Part shown: one piece after another, positions 12,152-28,147 of the stretch
How the letters are laid out: every line of letters begins with the position of its first letter
Position numbering within the stretch: position 1 is the first letter of the stretch
Assembly (NCBI RefSeq): GCF_000143415.4
Contig: NW_003314408.1
Span: forward strand, 110,934-174,933
Direction: 5' to 3'
Source: Selaginella moellendorffii
Lineage: Eukaryota; Plantae; Lycopodiophyta
DNA length: 64,000 bases
The notes under the pieces: generated by a model
What the model was told of the DNA's origin: nothing
The model's database searches: none
What the model saw: the letters and a program-made list of their open reading frames with translations, nothing else
Position numbers and translations under genes: made by a program

Positions 12152-15100
12152 CTACGGGAAGCCGATCTCGTGCGCACCAAACTGCGATTGCTGGTGATGC
12201 TGCTGCTGATGGTGGTGATGGTATAAACCGATGGGATGATCTCTGCCAGGAATCCATCGCGCATCCAATCCAGCACCAGCACCACCGCCACCACCACCAG
12301 CGGCGGCGGCGATTTCTCCCGCGACGAGAAAGCCAGCATCGTTGGGAGGTGGAAAGCCGAGGAAGGCGCCAGGCGTCGCGAGAGGAGGAGGATGTCCGAA
12401 ACTCATTGGCGGAGCGCTGTGACCCGGTGGAAGATGCAAGCTGGCCAGCGGGGGGAGTGGCGGCTGCTGGTTGGAGCCATTTGGAGGGAAGAAGCTGTGA
12501 GGCCGCTGCTGCTGCTTGGAACTGTACAAGAGGTGGTGGTGAAGATCATGGTGGCCGAAAGCGGCGGCCGACGATGGTGGCGGAGCAAAGCCTCCTCCCT
12601 GGTGGAAGTGATGAGCGTGAAGCTGCTGCTGCTGCTGCTCAAACAGTGCCTGCTGCTGTTGTCGAGAGAATGATGGTCTCGCCGCTCGGGAGTATCCGGC
12701 ACTCGCTTCGCCGTTCGCTTGCTGCTTTGCCTGGATCGATGCTCTCGAGCCTTGCGACGCCAAGGCCTGCTGGAGCTGCTGGAGCTGCAGCGCGGACGAC
12801 TTCTGGTTGATCAGCGGAGGAGAGTGCGACCTGTAGAGGTTTGCTGGAGTAGTCACTGCTGGGCTTCCTCCTCCGTTGCTGGACGTGTCAAGCGGGTTCT
12901 CTGGCCGTTCGTTGGACGAGTTTTCCTGGGAGCCACTGTCCTTCGCCACCCCGAGGAAAGGATCGTTTGCCTTGCTGCTGCGCTGCTTCATGGCCTTCTT
13001 GAACTTGAGGAAATCGTTGAAGACGCCACTGTCAAGCTCCTCCGAAGGCTGTTTCCGGAGCTCCTGTCCCGGCGAAGTGTCGGCGATGACGTGCTGAGAG
13101 TTTCCGGAGCTCTTCTCCGGCACTTCTGGCTGCTTGTTCCAGGTTGGCCAGCTCGGGTGATGACTGTTGGTGTTCATGTACATCCCATCCAGTACCTCTG
13201 ACGCAGCGTTCGATTTTTCAGGAACTGTGGCAGCGTTCTTCGGCAAAAGATGATTGTTCGTCTCGCTCGCCACCTTTGCGGAAAGCGGCGCATCAGTCGA
13301 CCGGAGTTCCATCATAAACGACATGCCAAACAGTGCTTCTAGCGTTGCGGCACCAGACTCTTTTCCATCCCTGGCTTCACGCTGTCCATCACACGGTTTA
13401 GCTTCCACTGGAGGTGCCTTGTGTTCGTTGTCGGGCTTCAAGGATGCCTTTTGCAGTAGAGACAGTAAATGTCGCGAAGCATCCGTATCCGCTTCTTTCG
13501 CAACCGAATGTCCCCAGTTGTCGTTCAATTGCTCATTGTGCGTTTCAGTTTTTGCCTCGGCCAGTAGTGATTGCTCTATATCCTCACATGTAAGGAACGT
13601 GCTGGAGCTTCCATGGTGATCCGAACCCGCACCATTGTCGAAACCTTTCTCGATGTCCTCAAGTGACGGGCCGACTGGCATGGGTAGGATCAGCCCGTGC
13701 TGAACAACCTCAGACGATGGTTTCATCCCGGAGCTTTTAAGAGCAGGAGACCGTGGACTCTGGCCACCATCTTTTGATGTACTCCCAGCAGAACCAAACA
13801 AGGACAGGAATTCCATGGTAGAGTTATCATCTGCTCCAAACTCAATGAGAACATGCGAAAATGTGAAAGGAAAGAGTACCTTCAAAGCTGAACAGATGAG
13901 CAAACTTCGATGACGTCCTGGTTAGGCGCGCATCCACTTTCTCAGTCTGCACAGAAAATCAGACGCTGCATTGAATTTATAACTTGACTACCACCTGGGG
14001 GCTGGAGGAAGGAACTGTCACGGCACCAGTGCTGTTTGAGATTTTTCCATTGCCAGAATCATTAGTAAGCGCGAAGGATTCGGCTTCCGTTAACGAGATG
14101 GCAATTGCGAGTGGATCGACAGCACCAGATGATTGCTGAAGCGGTATAACGTCGCCACCGATAGCCTTTTCTTCTTTAGTCTGGATGCCTTAAGAGCATC
14201 AGAAACCAGATATAGGACTGAAGCTTTACCTCTTCGTTGTTCTGCTCCTTTCTGGCGCTCGTCTTTTTACTAAAGCCAGGAGGTACCAAAGGCCGCGATC
14301 CTTGTTTCGCATTCTGCTCTACTGGTAGTACTTTAGTATCGTCGTCACGTTTCTTTTCCTCCTGACGTTTCCTCTCCTGTTGTTGCTCCTTTCGCATCGA
14401 CTCGAACGACTCTGCAAGTTTAAGTTGAGACAAGAATGAGCGTAAATACGAAGGTCCAGCAAATTACCTCGTCTTTTGCGCTCTTCCTCTTCTCTATCCT
14501 CAGTAGAAATTTTCTCTCCGAAAGTTTCACCATCAATAGCGTCTAGATCATTCCGATATCCACCAGAAAACTGATCCAAGGCAATTCAGCTTGGAAAGAG
14601 AACACAAAATCGTCAAACATCTTACTTTGTTGGGACGCGTATCATTGGCATTGTTCCGAGACCCTCTGCCACCTCCAACGAAGCGGTCGGAACCTCCAGG
14701 ATAAGCCCCACGTAGACCGCCACCACTTCCAAGTAAACCATCGTGCTCAGAGGCAGCTCCATCCCAGTGTCGCCCACCCCTCTCCCTCTCCCGATCAATA
14801 GAGCTACGATGATCCCACCTAGTCTGACCCGGTCCTTGTCGACTAGCACTAGTACGAAACGGACTTGAAAAAGAAGATCCTTCCTCGTCATAAGCTTTCC
14901 TCCTAGCCGGACCCTGAGAAAGAAGCCCCCCTCCATTCCCAGAGTTCCTATTTCGCCACTCAGGAACATCGTGACCAAAGTCACGATCTCGACGGTGTAA
15001 GAACTTGGTTCCAGGAGAAACCCCACTGTCCACTAAGTCGGGTGAGGGGGAGTCTCTGCAGACACCTTCCACAAACTTTAGCCCAGATGCTTGACAACAG

Positions 15101-20809: not shown

Positions 20810-21042
20810 TACATCTTCTTCCCTTGTGCGCGGCACTGCCCGTTTACCGCCACTATACCTCATGGGATCGAAAAGTCTTGTGCATCGTACCGCGCGGCAC
20901 TGCCCGAGCTCACCGCGCGCATGTAAAAGAGAGGCATATTCTATGGCATCCGCAGGCCGGCAGCCCGCCCAAATTTAATTCAAATTCTGTCGAGGTTTTG
21001 TTTCGACGGCCCTCAACAAAGCTCTCGAGCGAGCTTGCGGCG

Positions 21043-21526
21043 ATGGCGGCGATGGCGGATCAAGAACTGGCGCTCTTCCTCAGCGGCAATGCCGGCATTC
21101 GCAGGGATCCGCCTCCACAGCTGCCCGGTCGCAGGGAAAATTGCGAGAATCTGCTCCGTCTTGCCGCGGTTGCATGCGCTCTGAATTCGCCGAGCCTGGC
21201 CGCCGCGATCCACCTCCACAAGAAGCGGCAGCGCGCTCCCAGGGCGAGGGATGCTACTCGCATCCAGCGGACGGCCGCCGTGGTTCTTGGGGTTCTATCG
21301 GACAGCGAGGACTTGCTCCCCACCGAGAAGATCATCCGGGAGCTTCTCGGCAATAATCCCGACACCAGCAAGGCGCTTCGGCTGTAAATCATTCTCCCCT
21401 CTCTTCTATCAATCTTCTTCCGTTCTTGATGGATCTCCTCGTCTTTCCAGGCTGCTGAAGCAAAAAAAGATCCAGCGTGTCGGGAGCGGCGGAAGAACAT
21501 GCCCATTCCGATATTACAGCATCTAG
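21043..21526 (+). CDS. Small plant protein with C-terminal putative helix-turn-helix-like motif (2 exons)
   Basis: IRELLGNNPDTSKALR|LLLKQKKIQRVGSGGRTCPFRYYSI* after splicing a GT-AG intron at about 21384-21450. It resembles a recalled conserved plant motif (LGDSPDTSKALRMLL...RSGTGGR.DPYIY). Confidence 0.7.
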
Positions 21527-21932
21527 ATCGGATCGATCGAGAGGTGGAGAGAGGTATTTTGTGATCGAGAGCGTCGATTTCTTGGATCACGGCATCACTG
21601 GTACTGTTATCTGAGGTAGAACTCCTGGATCGCTCTCAAATCTAGGGAAATTTTCACAGCATTGCTATGCAGGAATTGAGCGCTTCTTGGTCTTCGCAAA
21701 AAGGAATCCCCAATCGCGGCATCCAGGCGACGAGGACGATCAACACATCGTTGGCCATTCTCTCTCTCCATGAATCTCAAAATCATCCATCACTTCTTTC
21801 CAGAAAGCATCGGCTCTCTCCTTTACCCCCAAATCATCACATGGCAAGATGCCCGGTCTGGGAATCTCCTGTTCTTCCTATCGATCGATCGATTCCAGGC
21901 ATCCACGGGCAAATCTCCAGCGGCACTCGCGA

Positions 21933-22322
21933 TCATAGCACAGCGACGCCATTCTCCTTGACAGTGTTCAGCACGATCTCAAGCTTCTCTTGCAGCCTCT
22001 CGTTCTTCCTGGGCACATACGTCACAGCGTACACATCCGCCTCCATTGCCCTCTCCGCGATGAGCTTGCCGATCACCTCGCAGGCGCTGGCGCTGGTGAG
22101 CGATGGCAGCGAAGCTCTCAGATCCTTGGCGTTGGTCGTCGCCACGGCCACCGTCTTGCTCGTCACGCGGTGGACGATCTTGGCGTTCACGTAGCGCGAG
22201 GAGATGTAGACATCGATCGAGAAGGGCCTCATGTACTTCTCCGTTGCGCGCTTCCAGGATTTGCGATTCTTGCCGGGCTCGCCGGATGATTTGCCCGTCC
22301 ATCCCCCGGCTTGGATGATCAT
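21933..22322 (-). CDS. Organellar (bacterial-type) ribosomal protein uL18 family
   Basis: YMRPFSIDVYISSRYVNAKIVHRVTSKTVAVATTNAKDLRASLPSLT...ACEVIGKLIAERAMEADVYAVTY. Confidence 0.9.
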   Translation of the reverse strand: MIIQAGGWTGKSSGEPGKNRKSWKRATEKYMRPFSIDVYISSRYVNAKIVHRVTSKTVAVATTNAKDLRASLPSLTSASACEVIGKLIAERAMEADVYAVTYVPRKNERLQEKLEIVLNTVKENGVAVL

Positions 22323-22494
22323 CGACGATCGCTGGAAATCCAGAGAAATCTCGATTCAGGCAAGATATTTCATCGATCTCTCACCTTGTGCTTGGTTCTT
22401 GGCAGGAATAGCTCCTGGTAGAGAGGATTCGAGGGAAATGCTTGAGACAACAGCATTGCTCCTCAGAGTTTAGGGCTCTACCTAAAAGCCCGCC

Positions 22495-24499
22495 ATGGCG
22501 TCTCTGGGATTGGCGGGAGCGCCCGCCGCGGCGGAGTGTACGTATGGAGGGCGCAATGCGCAGTGGCTCTCGCAGGAGCTCCCTCGTCTTCTCTCAATGC
22601 AGGTATGGATCGATCTGTCACACGTATTGTTTTGTGATTTCTCTCGCAGAGAAATCTTCCTGGCAATGGTCTTGTTCTTAGCCGTGGATCGTGGTCTTGG
22701 GATTGTCACGAGGCTTGCCACTATCAGTTTCGAGGGGTTATGAGGTCACTGGCTAGCATTTTTCTCTCTTGGTTTGTATTGTTTTGGTTTATTTCCTCGA
22801 AGGTTTTCTAACATGACGAGACGCCATGAGCTCTTCATTGCCGAGACCCAAGGGAAGCTCCAGCTCCTCTCGCGAGGCTCAGTCGAGTCGATCAAAACGA
22901 AGCTCAAGGTTCGCATTGTTTTGATAAATCTCAACTTCTATTCTGTAGCTTTTCATGGCAGATTCTTTCCAGACATCCAGGAAACAAGCCAGAGGCAAGG
23001 AACGATCGCTACTGGCCTGCTTACATTACTAGAGCTGGAGAAAGCACGTCGATAGAGGTGTGTGTGTGTAACGTTTTTCGTGATTTCTCTCAGGTACTGA
23101 ATTCGTTCATGAATAAATAGGTGGTGGTCGATGTCGAATCGCACAGTCCTTTGCTCCTCTCGGATTTGCAGGCACGTACCTTTGACGTTCATTGTTGTAA
23201 GCTGATGAAACAATATGCAGGCTGTTTGCGTCGAGATGGAGTATGTTTGTTATGGTCCTCATGGACGGACAAATCATTCTCAACACGTCGTTCTTCCAAC
23301 GCACTACCCCGATTCGCCTTCCAAGGCTTCGTAAGCAAGCTCCGAGTCTCATCACAGTTTTCTAATCTACTTTTGCTTTTAAGGGAGGCGTTGAAGATAC
23401 AGCCGATCTACACACATCTTCTGTGCCATCTAGATGATCCTCTGGAGGTTCTTAAAAGGTGAGATACCTTTGACATGGTTAGTTTTTCTTTTCTTTTTTT
23501 CCCCCTGATCATGTACGCTGCAAAAGAAAAGATACGCGCTTCCATACGTCAAGCCGGGCGATGTCATTGCCATAGGAGAGACGCCACTTGCCATAATGCA
23601 AGGTAACTGTATGGAAAATAACGAGCTGACATCCTTTCAGGGCGTTACCGTCATCCTACAAGCTTGCAACCAGGCCTTCTTGCAAAGCTGGTGTGTCGTC
23701 TCTTCCATCCAACATCGTCCCTCGCTACCGCATGTGGTATGCAGGTAAATAAGCTTTCCTTTCCTAGTACATTACGCTTATTTCGGATAATCATAGGCTT
23801 TGATTGACATATCTGGGAAGCTCAGGATTGTCTTTGCGGTCGTCATTGCAGTTATTGCAAGGTAAGCAAAAATCGAATCATTCTTGACGATATTACGCGT
23901 TGCAGAACATTCGTAGACTATTTGGGCAGCGAGGCATGTTCTACCGACTAGCCGGGCCACAGGTACGACTCTGTGATTTTCATGCATGTTACTTCAGATT
24001 TTATTTTGCAGGCTAGGCTGATCGATGATGTTACCGGAACTCTCCCACCTTACGATCAATTCATAACACTTGGGCCGGTACAGTTTTTGCGAGATATTTT
24101 CTTCTCAAGATTTCTTCTTTGACCCTGTTTTCCTGAAGGTTCACACTAAAGCCACCGTGGATGCTCTCAAAGCTAAAACAGGTAATCGTGTGAGATGGAT
24201 TGTCTAGCATTGTCTAGCTTACCTTCGCAGGATGTGAAGTGGCTGTCGTGGACGTGAACGATTTGAAGAAAGTCCAAATACTAGCCGTATGTAAATGGAT
24301 GCTTGGCTTTGTTTTGGAGACCGACCCAACCTCATCGTGTGTAGGCATCCGACGGTGTGGACCACGACACATTATCGCAAGCTTTGATCAACAATCCTGC
24401 TGGTGAGCTGAAAGATGGTTGCTCTTCGTTCACTGACTAATTGAAACGTTTGCAGGGAATTCGGATGAGCAGACACCCATTGTGATTGTCAGAGCATAA
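22495..24499 (+). CDS. Cyanobacterial-type coenzyme F420-0:gamma-glutamyl ligase (CofE)-like protein, about 16 short exons
   Basis: Manual splicing gives [15 protein letters not shown]...[23 protein letters not shown]...[39 protein letters not shown]...[13 protein letters not shown]...HVVLP...[138 protein letters not shown]...[23 protein letters not shown]...[21 protein letters not shown] (TAA 24497-24499). The C-terminal exons join in frame at GT/GC-AG junctions; a few N-terminal junctions are less certain. Confidence 0.85.
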
Positions 24500-24611
24500 A
24501 ACGCCGAAACACCGAACACCGGAAACAAGTATAGAACAACGATCAGATTCTTTGTAAGGAGCAAAGACTGAACTTTGGCTCGCATATCATCCGGGCTGCT
24601 GCGGATTCTCC

Positions 24612-26010
24612 GTGAACAAAGGTTCTAAAACGAAAGCCCTTTTTAGTAGAATGGTGCGCTGCGGCGACGATGTTCTCGCCTTGAGCTTCCACGGTTCGGC
24701 CATGGAAATGTTCGATCGAGTCGAAGCAAGGTTTGGCCAAAGGAAAGATCCGCACCTGGTCGACGTGAATGGAATTATCTATACGAGCACTCCCTGAGGG
24801 CGATTACAGTTACGCGCTCCCCCCAGGTTTGTACATCTAGATTACTTACTCCCTCCTGAGCCATGCCCTCTTTTCTGTTCAGATGTGTTACGTGATCCGC
24901 AATTTGGCAAACTGGGGCGGCTTTCAAAACAGGATTATGGCCTCGTCAAGGAGGAGCAGTCAGGAAACAATCCCGAGGTTCTCAACTTCCGGCCCGCATT
25001 GGCTGCGCCTCCGTTGCCTTTACAGCTTGTTCCCGTGTTTGGAACCTTTCTGGACAGTGTAAGCACGGTCGCTGCATCCGCGTTATGATGATGACGAGTT
25101 CGAAATGACTAGTGCGCTGCGGAGGTAGTGGAAGGAGTACCTTGGGCTGCATTTGGAAGATGAGTGAAGAGAACAAGCATAGACTTGGGTATTCGGGAAG
25201 AGCGAGGCTCTTCTGGTACTCACAAAACTGCAGCGGGGCATGTCACTGGCGAAGACGGAGCCGCAGTCACACCCATTACTCAATTACAAGCTCTACTATA
25301 GCACTTGCCGGGAGGAGAGCCTGATACATGCTTCCCGGTACTCATCCTCGAGCGTGTTGGACAGCTGCTTCAGGTTGGTGCTGCTGTAGCTCTGCAAGGC
25401 CACCAGCCACTGGCATTGCTCCTTCCCGCAGCGATTCATAGTCATGATCAGGGTGCACGGTGCTGTTGTTTGTGTGGCGGTGAAGCAGACGGCTCTCGGG
25501 CTGCGGGAGTATTACCAGCGCTTTATGAATTCTGGGACGACAGTGGAACAAATGCACCCAGATAAGCGAGTCTATCTTGTCAAGCAATGCGAGGACTGCA
25601 GTGTTCAGCTGTACGGATATGCAGTCCACAAAGCGTGGGTGGGTCGACGCGGGCTACGCACCCCCGATATATGGTGAACCTCGAGAGGTGCCGCGTGGCT
25701 GGCTAGCGGTGGTAATGGGGCACCTGGATGCTGAGGAATGCTGCCAGCTTCTTTACTGCCACAGCGATGCGGAAAATCTCCGGGGCAAGGTGGTGGAGTG
25801 TCTAAAGGCTGCTCACCAGGTGAAAGTTGTTGAGACAAGCAGCGGGGAGGCTACGTGTGGCGTGCATGGCGACATGCGTGACAACAATGTTGTGGAAAGG
25901 TGGAGGTGAAGTTCATTGACTGAGGAAGGATTGCCAAGGGCACTGTATCCAGCGTTTATAAAACAACAAGATCAACTGGGCAGACGGAGTTGGAGCCAAC
26001 AGGCCACCTC
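24612..26010 (+). pseudogene. Degenerate protein-kinase-like (APH/fungal-type PKL) gene with frameshifts and stops
   Basis: Fragments in different frames: VLILERVGQLLQVGAAV, LGLREYY, YGYAVHKAW..., YAPPIYG...PRGWLAVVMGHL, AAHQ...GVHGDMRDNNVV (HGD catalytic loop) and VKFID* (truncated DFD-type motif). Confidence 0.6.
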
Positions 26011-26287: not shown

Positions 26288-28147
26288 ATGGCACATTCTC
26301 TAGCGCCGATCAGTGCGGCATTGCAGCGATCGATTCTTGAGCTATGCTTTGCAGGGCTGCCGCTGCTGCTTCTCACGCTCATCCTCCAGCTCCAGCTCCA
26401 ATGCGGCTCTTCGGGAATCACAAGCCCTTACCGGCGGAGGCTCCAAGCCTCGGAGGATTTGCCCGTCGACAGCGAGTTTCTGCGACCTCCTGATCTAGCA
26501 GGCTGTGGAAATGCGCCAGAACAGGTTTTCTTTGCGATAACTCCTCGGTTTGATTAGAACTTTGTGTTCCAGGTCCACATAACGCAAGGGAGTGTTACTG
26601 CGGATTCCATGATCGTTTCCTGGGTTACTCCGTCACAACCTGGATCGTTGGCTGTAAGTTTTGGAAACGAGACAGCAAAGTACTCGAGGACGGCGACTGG
26701 AAACATCACAACATATAAATACGCGAACTACACATCTGGCTACATCCACCATGTGAAGCTCACTAATCTCGAGGTGTGTTTGATATGATCTACAGTTTTC
26801 TGGCCGACTCACTGTTGTGTCCTTGTTTTTGGTTCTTGCTTCCTTGTCCAAAGTATGCTACGAAGTATTACTACAGACTCGGCGATGGAGAATGCGCTCG
26901 ACAATTCTGGTTCGTCACTGCACCGAAATCTGGCCCCGACGTTGCGTACACATTTGGCGTCATAGGTTTGTGTCTATTATATCCTTTCGAAACCGACAAT
27001 TGCTTCTGTCGCAGGAGATCTCGGACAGACGTATGACTCCCTCAACACCTTTCAGCACTACTTAAACAGCAGCGGACAGACTCTTCTTTACGTCGGAGAC
27101 CTCTCATACGCCGATCATTATCCCTTGGACGACAATAATCGTTGGGACACTTGGGGTCGATTGGTGGAGCCGAGCACCGCGTATCAACCTTGGATCTGGA
27201 CGGCGGGAAACCACGAGCTAGACTACCGTCCAGCAATCGTAAGCTAGTGCGCATTCTAGACTCTACCAGGTTATATAGCTTACAAGTTTCCGGCGGTGCT
27301 AACTTCTTCCAGAGCGAGGTGATACCATTCAAGCCGTATCTTCATCGCTATCAAACACCCCATCGTTCATCAAAGAGTACATCGCAGCTCTGGTATTCGA
27401 TCAACAGGGCGTCAGCGCACATCATCGTGCTGTCTTCATACTCCGCATATGGTTTGCGAATGGCTTGCTAACTAATGTTTCTTATAAGCAACGGTCGTGC
27501 AGGGAAATATACCCCGCAGTGGGCATGGCTGCAGAATGACCTCCAGAATATAAACAGGAAGGAAACCCCGTGGGTGATTGTTTTGATGCATTCCCCGTGG
27601 TACAACAGTAACACCCATCACTACATGGAGGGCGAAACGATGCGTGTGCAATTCGAAGCATGGTTTGTGCAATACAGAGTCGACATTGTGTTTGCCGGGC
27701 ACGTTCATGCATACGAACGGAGTGTAAGTTTTGTTCTCTCTTTTCTTCCTTTTGCTAGCTTTCTTTTCTTAATGCTTTTGTGACCACAGCACCGCGTCTC
27801 TAATATCGAGTACAACGTTGTCAACGGCCAATGCTCTCCATCCCGCAACGAGTCTGCGCCTGTCTACATAACAGTCGGCGATGGAGGAAACATAGAAGGG
27901 CTCGCTGGAAAGTAGGTGGTTTTTTCTTAGTCTTCTCTTTCCGGCCCTGTGAGATTTATACGGACATTTTCCCAGCTTCATGCAACCGCAGCCAAACTAC
28001 TCGGCATATCGCGAGGCGAGTTTTGGTCACGCAATGCTCGAGATCAAAAACAGGACGCATGCTTTCTACTATTGGCACCGTAACCAGGACGGAGAGGCTG
28101 TAAAAAGCGATTCGACTTGGCTCACAAACAGGTACTTTGAATTTTGA
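26288..28147 (+). CDS. Secreted purple acid phosphatase (PAP10/PAP26-type, multi-exon)
   Basis: Signal peptide; NAPEQVHITQG. Metal-binding motifs GDLG, GDLSYAD, GNHE, VLMH and [26 protein letters not shown], ending WLTNRYFEF* (28145-28147). Confidence 0.95.

Follow-up and report, generated by a model that had tools for sequence, protein, structure and literature searches.

CofE is a ligase that requires GTP and Mn2+ and makes an amide bond via an acyl phosphate (PMC8498797, PMC10861534). The CofE homologue of Chlamydia trachomatis, CT611 (FolC2), has folylpolyglutamate or dihydrofolate synthase function on a non-F420 substrate and complements an E. coli folC mutant (PMC1971073). Since a chlamydial CofE homologue could replace FolC, the CofE superfamily was not tied to F420. 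Here we describe a CofE-like gene from the lycophyte Selaginella moellendorffii, located at 22495-24499 on the plus strand of a 64,000-nucleotide stretch of contig NW_003314408.1 (the window, in which all positions below are counted). We considered it likely, with a probability of roughly 0.7, that this gene was the Selaginella orthologue of an uncharacterised two-domain family and that its product was a predicted nucleotide-dependent amide ligase acting on a non-F420 substrate. A sequence-only reading of the window had previously described the locus as a hidden gene for a ligase of this type, possibly modifying plastid peptidoglycan.

The fold of CofE from Archaeoglobus fulgidus (PDB 2PHN, 2G9I, 7ULD) was that of the C-terminal ~205 residues of the family, and the same amide chemistry, dependent on a nucleoside triphosphate (NTP) and a metal, would be expected (PMC8498797, PMC10861534). 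However, CofE is a single domain of ~250 amino acids (aa), or part of a nitroreductase-like fusion in FbiB, whereas the Selaginella protein had 397 aa with an extra N-terminal beta-sandwich of ~150 residues. The family also differed from CofE by an inserted stretch with two invariant cysteines, by a membrane anchor added in the cyanobacterial members and by its hosts, which are not known to make F420. The cyanobacterial proteins (e.g., WP_190345038.1 from Leptolyngbya sp. FACHB-36) had the same two-domain architecture as the plant protein, with all invariant residues in common. The difference between them was at the N-terminus, where a transmembrane helix and an Arg cluster stood in place of the plant presequence and the TYG..N.QWLS.EL helix. 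In comparison to FolC2, the cyanobacterial CofE-like family was not clustered with folate genes, while CT611 was.

Two other systems were useful for comparison. In mycothiol synthesis, the MshC ligase, which has an aminoacyl-tRNA-synthetase-like fold, acts together with the tandem-GNAT acetyltransferase MshD. The pairing of an amide ligase with a tandem GNAT protein was similar to the arrangement found here in cyanobacteria, but this was an analogy of logic only, since MshC did not have the CofE fold and there was no sign of a mycothiol-like product for the CofE-like family. MurT/GatD and the AsnB-type LtsA amidate a stem-peptide carboxyl on the lipid-linked precursor at the cytoplasmic membrane face. 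This was the reaction type proposed in the sequence-only reading, and a CofE-like domain was fused to asparagine synthase in some bacteria. However, the folds of these enzymes were unrelated to CofE, and no mur-gene neighbourhood was seen for the CofE-like family.

An expressed gene and its relatives

RNA data with the same organism label were aligned on positions 21900-25100, namely Logan contigs from three runs of three studies and one stranded run of raw reads. The splice joints defined 16 exons on the plus strand (22495-24499), which were joined into a coding sequence of 1194 nucleotides (nt) in frame, from the ATG at 22495 to the stop codon at 24497-24499, and encoded 397 aa. The introns were 38-73 nt long, the smallest being 23603-23640 (38 nt). 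Fourteen joints were listed within 22495-24499, each of them seen in all four RNA runs and, in the stranded run, in 9-26 raw reads with 9-21 start places. After the stated cut offsets, 13 of the 14 were GT..AG. The other one, 23166 to 23216, had seven ambiguous letters with no possible GT placement and fitted a GC..AG intron at 23172-23220 (GCACGT...ATGCAG), which had the sole non-GT donor among the 15 introns. The fifteenth joint, 22908 to 22962, was seen as contig loose ends in all three contig runs.

In the stranded run, the first mates were on the minus strand across the CofE-like gene and on the plus strand across its upstream neighbour. For a standard stranded library, this indicated that the CofE-like RNA was from the plus strand and head to head with the neighbour. 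Plus-strand coverage started at ~22458-22471, with none at 22328-22434, and the start codon was fixed because an in-frame stop (22483-22485) was located upstream of the ATG. The 3' untranslated region extended to ~24597 according to contig pieces 24473-24597 in three runs, and the read depth fell after 24575. The alleles in the reads differed at 13 synonymous, 8 non-synonymous and 3 intronic positions, which fitted a gene under selection. The CofE-like locus was a real, expressed and spliced plant gene. The earlier prediction of about 16 small exons and a protein of roughly 400 aa, including its coordinates, was confirmed by the 397-aa model and by splice joints supported in four runs. In the three forward frames of 22400-24600, the motifs were spread over many short open stretches. 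All of the predicted motifs were present in the product as well, but the spacing from GR to HVV was five residues (YGPHGR.....HVVLP) instead of two.

On the other hand, the gene was not hidden, as it had already been annotated as LOC112343386. The stored record ('uncharacterized protein LOC112343386 isoform X1 [Selaginella moellendorffii]') was identical to the 397-aa model over aa 1-295. Its acceptor at 23906 was 11 nt upstream of the RNA-supported 23917, which caused a frameshift and a stop at 308 aa. As a result, isoform X1 lost the C-terminal 102 aa with the invariant motifs IDD..G, VDVND and NPAGN.DEQTP. An alternative acceptor of exon 4, at 22949, was present in two of the three contig runs and also led to a frameshift and a stop. 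Acceptors 22949 and 23906 were two unproductive choices, and the isoform X1 model should give way to the RNA-supported 397-aa product.

For the searches and the folding, residues 1-295 of isoform X1, single exons and close orthologues were used in place of the full 397-aa protein. A HMMER search with exon 9 (34 aa) against 1.84 billion cluster representatives identified 43 proteins at E <= 0.001. The likeness to cyanobacterial proteins named F420-0:gamma-glutamyl ligase, which had been noted earlier on the basis of motifs, was evident in the alignments: cyanobacterial proteins with a length of 385-400 aa were 48-53% identical over ~365 residues, and many of them had been automatically named 'F420-0:Gamma-glutamyl ligase' in UniRef and NCBI. 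Identity was higher, at 60-69%, for the full-length proteins from mosses, liverworts, a lycophyte, ferns and a gymnosperm. When added to a family alignment of 60 sequences, the Selaginella protein had the conserved residue in 105 of the 106 columns with at least 90% conservation and in each of the 39 invariant columns. Judged by sequence, the cyanobacterial two-domain proteins were true orthologues of the Selaginella protein. Relatives had been expected in Negativicutes too, but none was named among the 43 HMMER representatives, the best 120 matches of the lists, the best 80 of at least 540 genome matches, or the Atlas clusters. In the literature, we found no characterised member and no paper that connected the CofE-like family with cyanobacteria, with chloroplasts or with peptidoglycan.

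IQ-TREE was used for a quick maximum-likelihood tree of 46 members, which had no outgroup. All eukaryotic sequences were on one side of a branch with a support of 82 in the Shimodaira-Hasegawa-like approximate likelihood ratio test (SH-aLRT). Two sequences in the tree were considered eukaryotic because their contig carried clathrin, Sec20 and pescadillo genes. The Selaginella protein was placed within a 12-row embryophyte group (SH-aLRT 95), which was inside a 14-row group including zygnematophytes (98). The zygnematophytes were sister to the embryophytes, and the internal order of the eukaryotic clade followed the species tree. This single eukaryotic clade was consistent with one endosymbiotic transfer and subsequent vertical descent, in agreement with the endosymbiotic origin suggested earlier.

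Fold, membrane anchor and gene string

An AlphaFold2 model of the Sphagnum orthologue (residues 66-470), the complete orthologue closest to the Selaginella protein, had a mean predicted local distance difference test score (pLDDT) of 89.8 and a predicted template modelling score (pTM) of 0.90. Model residues 39-198 formed an N-terminal Ig-like beta-sandwich with generic matches to the adaptin ear and ApaG-like domains (Z ~9). Model residues 192-401 matched the A. fulgidus CofE in VIA-align with Z 14.2 (182 aligned residues, root mean square deviation 3.1, ~20% identity). This match covered chain residues 2-223 (2phn, 7uld), and the next unrelated rows were at ~9. In Foldseek, CofE was the top match in both PDB and Swiss-Prot with a probability of 1.0. 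In Selaginella numbering, the CofE-like domain corresponded to ~aa 191-397 (exons 7-16). The acidic motifs GD....GE, IDD..G, VDVND and DEQTP were invariant in the family and would be in keeping with a metal-nucleotide site.

For the C-terminal domain, more distant relatives (22-34% identity) were found in the AlphaFold cluster library and the ESM Atlas. Some of them were fused to a glutamine-hydrolysing asparagine synthase or to TPR repeats, and the fusion proteins (A0A1F7GX01, C7QF66, A0A1B0ZI55) were from Actinomycetota, Caldisericota and other groups. Such fusions might be part of a broader branch of the CofE superfamily that has yet to be explored. Two other matches were taken as chance: an unrelated toxin chain (E 0.055, 47 residues) in a phmmer search of the cyanobacterial C-terminal domain against PDB, and a zf-CCCH match (E 0.023) among ten single exons of 21-36 aa.

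The N-terminus was different in cyanobacteria and eukaryotes. All 80 of the 80 cyanobacterial homologues had an N-terminal hydrophobic 19-mer (median Kyte-Doolittle value 2.57), followed by an Arg cluster (E.QYRRR) and then the PGN motif. By the positive-inside rule, both domains of the cyanobacterial proteins would face the cytoplasm. The eukaryotic members did not have the anchor and instead had a conserved TYG..N.QWLS.EL.RL segment, which was helical in the model. In most eukaryotic species, this helix was preceded by 27-95 Ser/Thr/Arg-rich residues resembling a transit peptide. An internal hydrophobic segment, encoded by exon 10, had ~13 hydrophobic residues flanked by Arg and was hydrophobic across the family. 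We rejected it as a membrane span because the model showed a high-confidence helix packed inside the domain. The suggestion that this segment suited a lipid-linked substrate was thus not borne out, since a helix packed within the domain was poor evidence of membrane or lipid binding.

A scan of species-representative genomes gave at least 540 relatives, and the best 80, all from cyanobacteria, were used to cluster and then name the neighbouring open reading frames (ORFs). The CofE-like gene (80/80 loci) was at the head of a same-strand string. It was followed by a tandem GNAT gene of ~400 aa in 70 of the 80 loci, by RuvX (65/80), DUF1292/DUF3727 (59/80), the endolytic murein transglycosylase MltG (57/80) and a YqeG-type HAD phosphatase (43/80), and in the seventh position by ProB (24/80). 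The second-place neighbour did not have a Pfam match, but its fold was that of a tandem GNAT (E 2e-13 to 2wpw). The CofE-like and GNAT genes were separated by a median of 110 bp, and GNAT and RuvX by a median of 23 bp. A marine AT-rich Prochlorococcus-like contig had the same order minus MltG, with overlapping genes and a weakly similar GNAT-like protein in the second position. Such a stable order across distant cyanobacteria suggested co-transcription of at least the first two genes. The asparagine-synthase fusions and the tandem GNAT might also recall pathways that build small N-acylated, amidated peptides.

The genes upstream of the string varied (CruF/CruG, Crr6, a cyclase, an SLH protein, RNase H, IlvD, ZIP), and they were rejected as members of the conserved unit. 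The myxoxanthophyll genes cruF and cruG (NCBIfam equivalogs, E 1e-140 and 2e-195) were found just upstream in divergent orientation at about half of the cyanobacterial loci, while other lineages had Crr6, UDP-GlcNAc 2-epimerase or other genes there. Searches by tblastn with GNAT, RuvX, DUF3727, MltG, YqeG, ProB, CruF and CruG found none of them in the window or in a picoeukaryote contig with the CofE-like gene (Logan SRR32456863, from an intron-poor green genome). In the latter, an AA_kinase gene adjoined the CofE-like gene on the other strand, and the CofE-like protein did not have an N-terminal extension before its conserved AYGG..WL helix.

We propose that the C-terminal domain, similar to CofE, would convert a carboxylate of the substrate into an acyl phosphate with the help of an NTP and a divalent metal. 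An amine would then attack the acyl phosphate to produce an amide, and the substrate would not be F420-0. In cyanobacteria, the reaction would take place on the cytoplasmic membrane face and would probably be coupled to an N-acylation step carried out by the adjacent tandem GNAT. In green eukaryotes, where the anchor was replaced by a presequence and the conserved helix, the enzyme would work in the plastid, although this was doubtful for Selaginella itself.

A number of observations weighed against the assignment of the Selaginella gene to such a ligase. The Pfam F420_ligase profile (PF01996) reached only 12.6-18.7 bits in five of nine full-length relatives, below its gathering score of 25. 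These weak matches were always on the GD....GE stretch, and a precomputed PF01996 match was present in a minority of the cyanobacterial relatives. Moreover, no F420_ligase match was found by Pfam in isoform X1 (308 aa) and ten single exons, five full-length relatives did not have any NCBIfam match, and a profile of 60 family members did not match any PDB sequence even at E 10. Thus, the expected F420_ligase homology was upheld by the CofE fold of the orthologue model but not by the Pfam profile. The modelled protein was the Sphagnum orthologue, 69% identical to the Selaginella protein, and not the Selaginella protein itself. Catalytic competence was suggested only by the invariant acidic motifs. 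Additionally, the Selaginella protein had only 14 residues before the first conserved block, an upstream exon was impossible and plastid import was not evident; the lack of a clear transit peptide in exon 1 had been noticed previously. Finally, the conserved gene order may be inherited synteny with no functional link, and order alone was no proof of a pathway.

The CofE fold and the automatic UniRef and NCBI names would also agree with a genuine gamma-glutamyl ligase of F420 or deazaflavin metabolism. FO, a deazaflavin for photolyases, is produced by cyanobacteria and some algae, which could be seen as support for this explanation (PMC8498797). However, the F420_ligase matches were below the threshold, and the architecture was unlike that of CofE and FbiB. 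No cof gene was seen within the 80 cyanobacterial neighbourhoods. FO lacks a carboxylate that could be activated, and F420-0 depends on CofC/CofD. To our knowledge, neither CofC/CofD nor F420 is known in cyanobacteria or plants. Therefore, we considered this explanation extremely unlikely and the database name F420 ligase very probably wrong; the earlier proposal of a substrate other than F420 was a reasonable inference.

Another possibility with the same fold was that an amino acid, glutamate or a different one, would be added to a non-F420 cofactor, for example folate or a pterin, by analogy with chlamydial FolC2. It would be in agreement with the replacement of FolC by a CofE homologue in E. 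coli (PMC1971073). ProB, a glutamate-using kinase, was in the string at 24 of the 80 loci, but the conserved string did not include any folate or pterin gene. Cyanobacteria and plants have canonical FolC/FPGS, so there was no gap in the folate pathway to fill. The beta-sandwich and the membrane anchor were also left unexplained, and this role appeared very improbable.

The same string contained two genes, RuvX/YqgF and the YqeG-type HAD phosphatase, that are linked to ribosome maturation in other bacteria, and GNAT enzymes include ribosomal-protein acetyltransferases. Accordingly, an amide ligation on a ribosomal protein, a translation factor or RNA, loosely similar to RimK, could be imagined. 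However, this explanation was based on gene order alone, the membrane anchor fitted it poorly, and a core function of plastid translation would not be expected to disappear in angiosperms. We regarded a translational role as hardly probable.

Exon layout and flanking genes

Exon 1 (22495-22602) had the start codon and encoded aa 1-36, a short N-terminus with the conserved eukaryote-specific helix, and its joint to 22650 was present in four runs. Exon 2 (22650-22744) encoded aa 37-67 plus 2 nt, with the PGN motif and the first part of the beta-sandwich, and was delimited by joints 22602 to 22650 and 22744 to 22803. The latter joint was also the 5' boundary of exon 3 (22803-22908), while the 3' joint of this exon, to 22962, was derived from contig loose ends. 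Exon 4 (22962-23057) contained a 10-residue motif; the loose ends were at 22960 and 22908 (CTTTTCAT), and the next joint was 23057 to 23121. Exon 5 (23121-23171) encoded 17 aa and was followed by the GC-AG intron. Exon 6 (23221-23330) carried the YGPHGR.....HVVLP motif, and its joint 23330 to 23384 was covered by 26 reads. Exon 7 (23384-23458; joints 23330 to 23384 and 23458 to 23532) also had a 10-residue motif, and within this exon the beta-sandwich ended and the CofE-like domain started at ~aa 191 (23388), according to the orthologue model.

Exon 8 (23532-23602) contained a 15-residue motif with the invariant D224, E230, P232 and Q237, and the sub-threshold Pfam F420_ligase matches of the orthologues were located here. 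Exon 9 (23641-23744), which was the HMMER query, had a 14-residue motif with the two invariant cysteines C256 and C269, and exon 10 (23797-23861) encoded the hydrophobic helix; the joints of both were supported by RNA. The joint 23861 to 23917, with 16 reads, led to exon 11 (23917-23962), which in the stored NCBI isoform X1 began at 23906. Exon 12 (24012-24077) contained a 22-residue motif with the invariant D314, D315, G318, P322 and D324, and exon 14 (24231-24286) contained VVDVNDL with the invariant V352, D353 and N355, both with RNA-supported joints. Exon 13 (24139-24181) was located between them (joints 24077 to 24139 and 24181 to 24231). Exon 15 (24345-24402) was flanked by joints 24286 to 24345 and 24402 to 24456, the latter leading to exon 16 (24456-24499) with a 13-residue motif and the stop codon.

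Upstream of the gene, an expressed single-exon ORF on the minus strand (21933-22322) encoded an organellar-type ribosomal protein L18 (Pfam Ribosomal_L18p, E 1.5e-08). The L18 and CofE-like transcripts were head to head and only ~125-140 bp apart, which suggested a shared bidirectional promoter. Further upstream, a plus-strand ORF (20824-21387) had a C-terminal match to the HTH_74 three-helical bundle (E 1.4e-10) and was probably part of a larger spliced gene. On the other side, a second plus-strand transcript (24568-25100 and beyond, with an intron at 24827-24879) started near or overlapped the 3' end of the CofE-like mRNA. In two contig runs, 6 nt were deleted at 25025 and several differences were clustered at 25014-25020, which probably represented the other haplotype. 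The ORFs further downstream were kinase-like in appearance (HGDMRDNN motif near 25860), and a purple acid phosphatase gene had exons at 26564-27783 on the plus strand (Pur_ac_phosph_N, E 1e-17; Metallophos, E 1.6e-10). An Rfam scan of the whole window did not give any match.

Candidate substrates and distribution in the green lineage

A cell-envelope or peptidoglycan precursor was one substrate candidate among several for the predicted ligase. In the sequence-only reading, it had been proposed that the enzyme could modify chloroplast peptidoglycan. Namely, a polyamine or another amine would be used to amidate a carboxyl of the stem peptide or of a lipid-linked precursor, in cyanobacteria and in the plastids that keep peptidoglycan. 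The presence of MltG in the conserved string (57 of the 80 loci) was in favour of this idea, and a membrane anchor with a catalytic part facing the cytoplasm would suit a lipid-linked precursor. Moreover, the adjoining tandem GNAT could provide an N-acetylated amine or synthesise it. In the picoeukaryote contig, a gene for the D-Ala-D-Ala carboxypeptidase VanY (12822-13943) was located 2.6 kb from the CofE-like gene, which also pointed in this direction.

However, the known systems of peptidoglycan amidation use enzymes of the Mur-ligase or AsnB type, while this family had the CofE fold, with no Mur-ligase or AsnB-type match among the best structural matches. The string did not include any mur, mraY or pbp gene, and in the Prochlorococcus-like contig it was without MltG. 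RuvX-DUF1292-MltG is, as far as we know, an old cluster that is conserved in Firmicutes without a CofE-like gene, and therefore the adjacency of MltG may be incidental. The family appeared to be widespread in cyanobacteria, yet we know of no report of D-Glu amidation by polyamines in cyanobacterial murein. In addition, the Selaginella protein did not have an evident transit peptide.

The distribution of the eukaryotic members gave a mixed picture. In streptophytes, the named members were from Mesostigma, Chlorokybus, Klebsormidium, Mesotaenium, Closterium, liverworts, mosses, lycophytes, ferns and Cryptomeria. The other green algae were represented by Pycnococcus, Pseudoscourfieldia, Pyramimonas, Tetraselmis and Chloropicon. 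The streptophyte algae, bryophytes, lycophytes, ferns, gymnosperms and Chloropicon belong to lineages that are regarded in published surveys as retaining peptidoglycan or that are outside the core chlorophytes, in favour of a role in its metabolism (PMC4815162, PMC10784329). With a liverwort or gymnosperm query, there was no angiosperm among the best 120 matches, although cyanobacterial proteins at 48-50% identity did appear with the latter query, and this was also in line with such a role. However, angiosperm loss was only weak evidence for it, because several unrelated cyanobacterial traits are lost in the same pattern.

A full peptidoglycan toolkit has been reported in Citrus sinensis, Asparagus officinalis, Thuja, Chloropicon, Ulva and Micromonas pusilla (PMC10784329; PMC4815162). 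Against the peptidoglycan role, no member from Citrus, Asparagus or Micromonas pusilla was seen among the best 120 matches listed, an absence that was provisional since several clusters were unnamed. There was also no glaucophyte and no Negativicutes member among the matches listed. Thus, the correlation between the distribution of the family and the retention of peptidoglycan was imperfect at best, and we considered the amidation of a peptidoglycan precursor unlikely. It could be further speculated that the ligase and the tandem GNAT are an unrecognised two-enzyme system that puts an N-acylated amine or amino acid on a lipid-linked envelope precursor, of peptidoglycan or of another kind, in cyanobacteria, and that the ligase was kept for the plastid envelope until its loss in angiosperms. 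We regarded this broader scenario as unlikely as well.

Taken as the Selaginella orthologue of a two-domain family of predicted amide ligases, the gene belonged to a group that was apparently widespread in cyanobacteria, including picocyanobacteria, and extended from prasinophytes to gymnosperms in the green lineage, with no member studied so far. It was a gene of endosymbiotic origin found in no angiosperm searched, and would be among the few cyanobacterial traits kept only in non-flowering plants. The linkage to MltG and the tandem GNAT provided a testable entry into the envelope biochemistry of cyanobacteria and plastids. If the two-enzyme system is real, it would be the first enzymatic addition to plastid peptidoglycan metabolism outside the Mur/MraY/PBP set.

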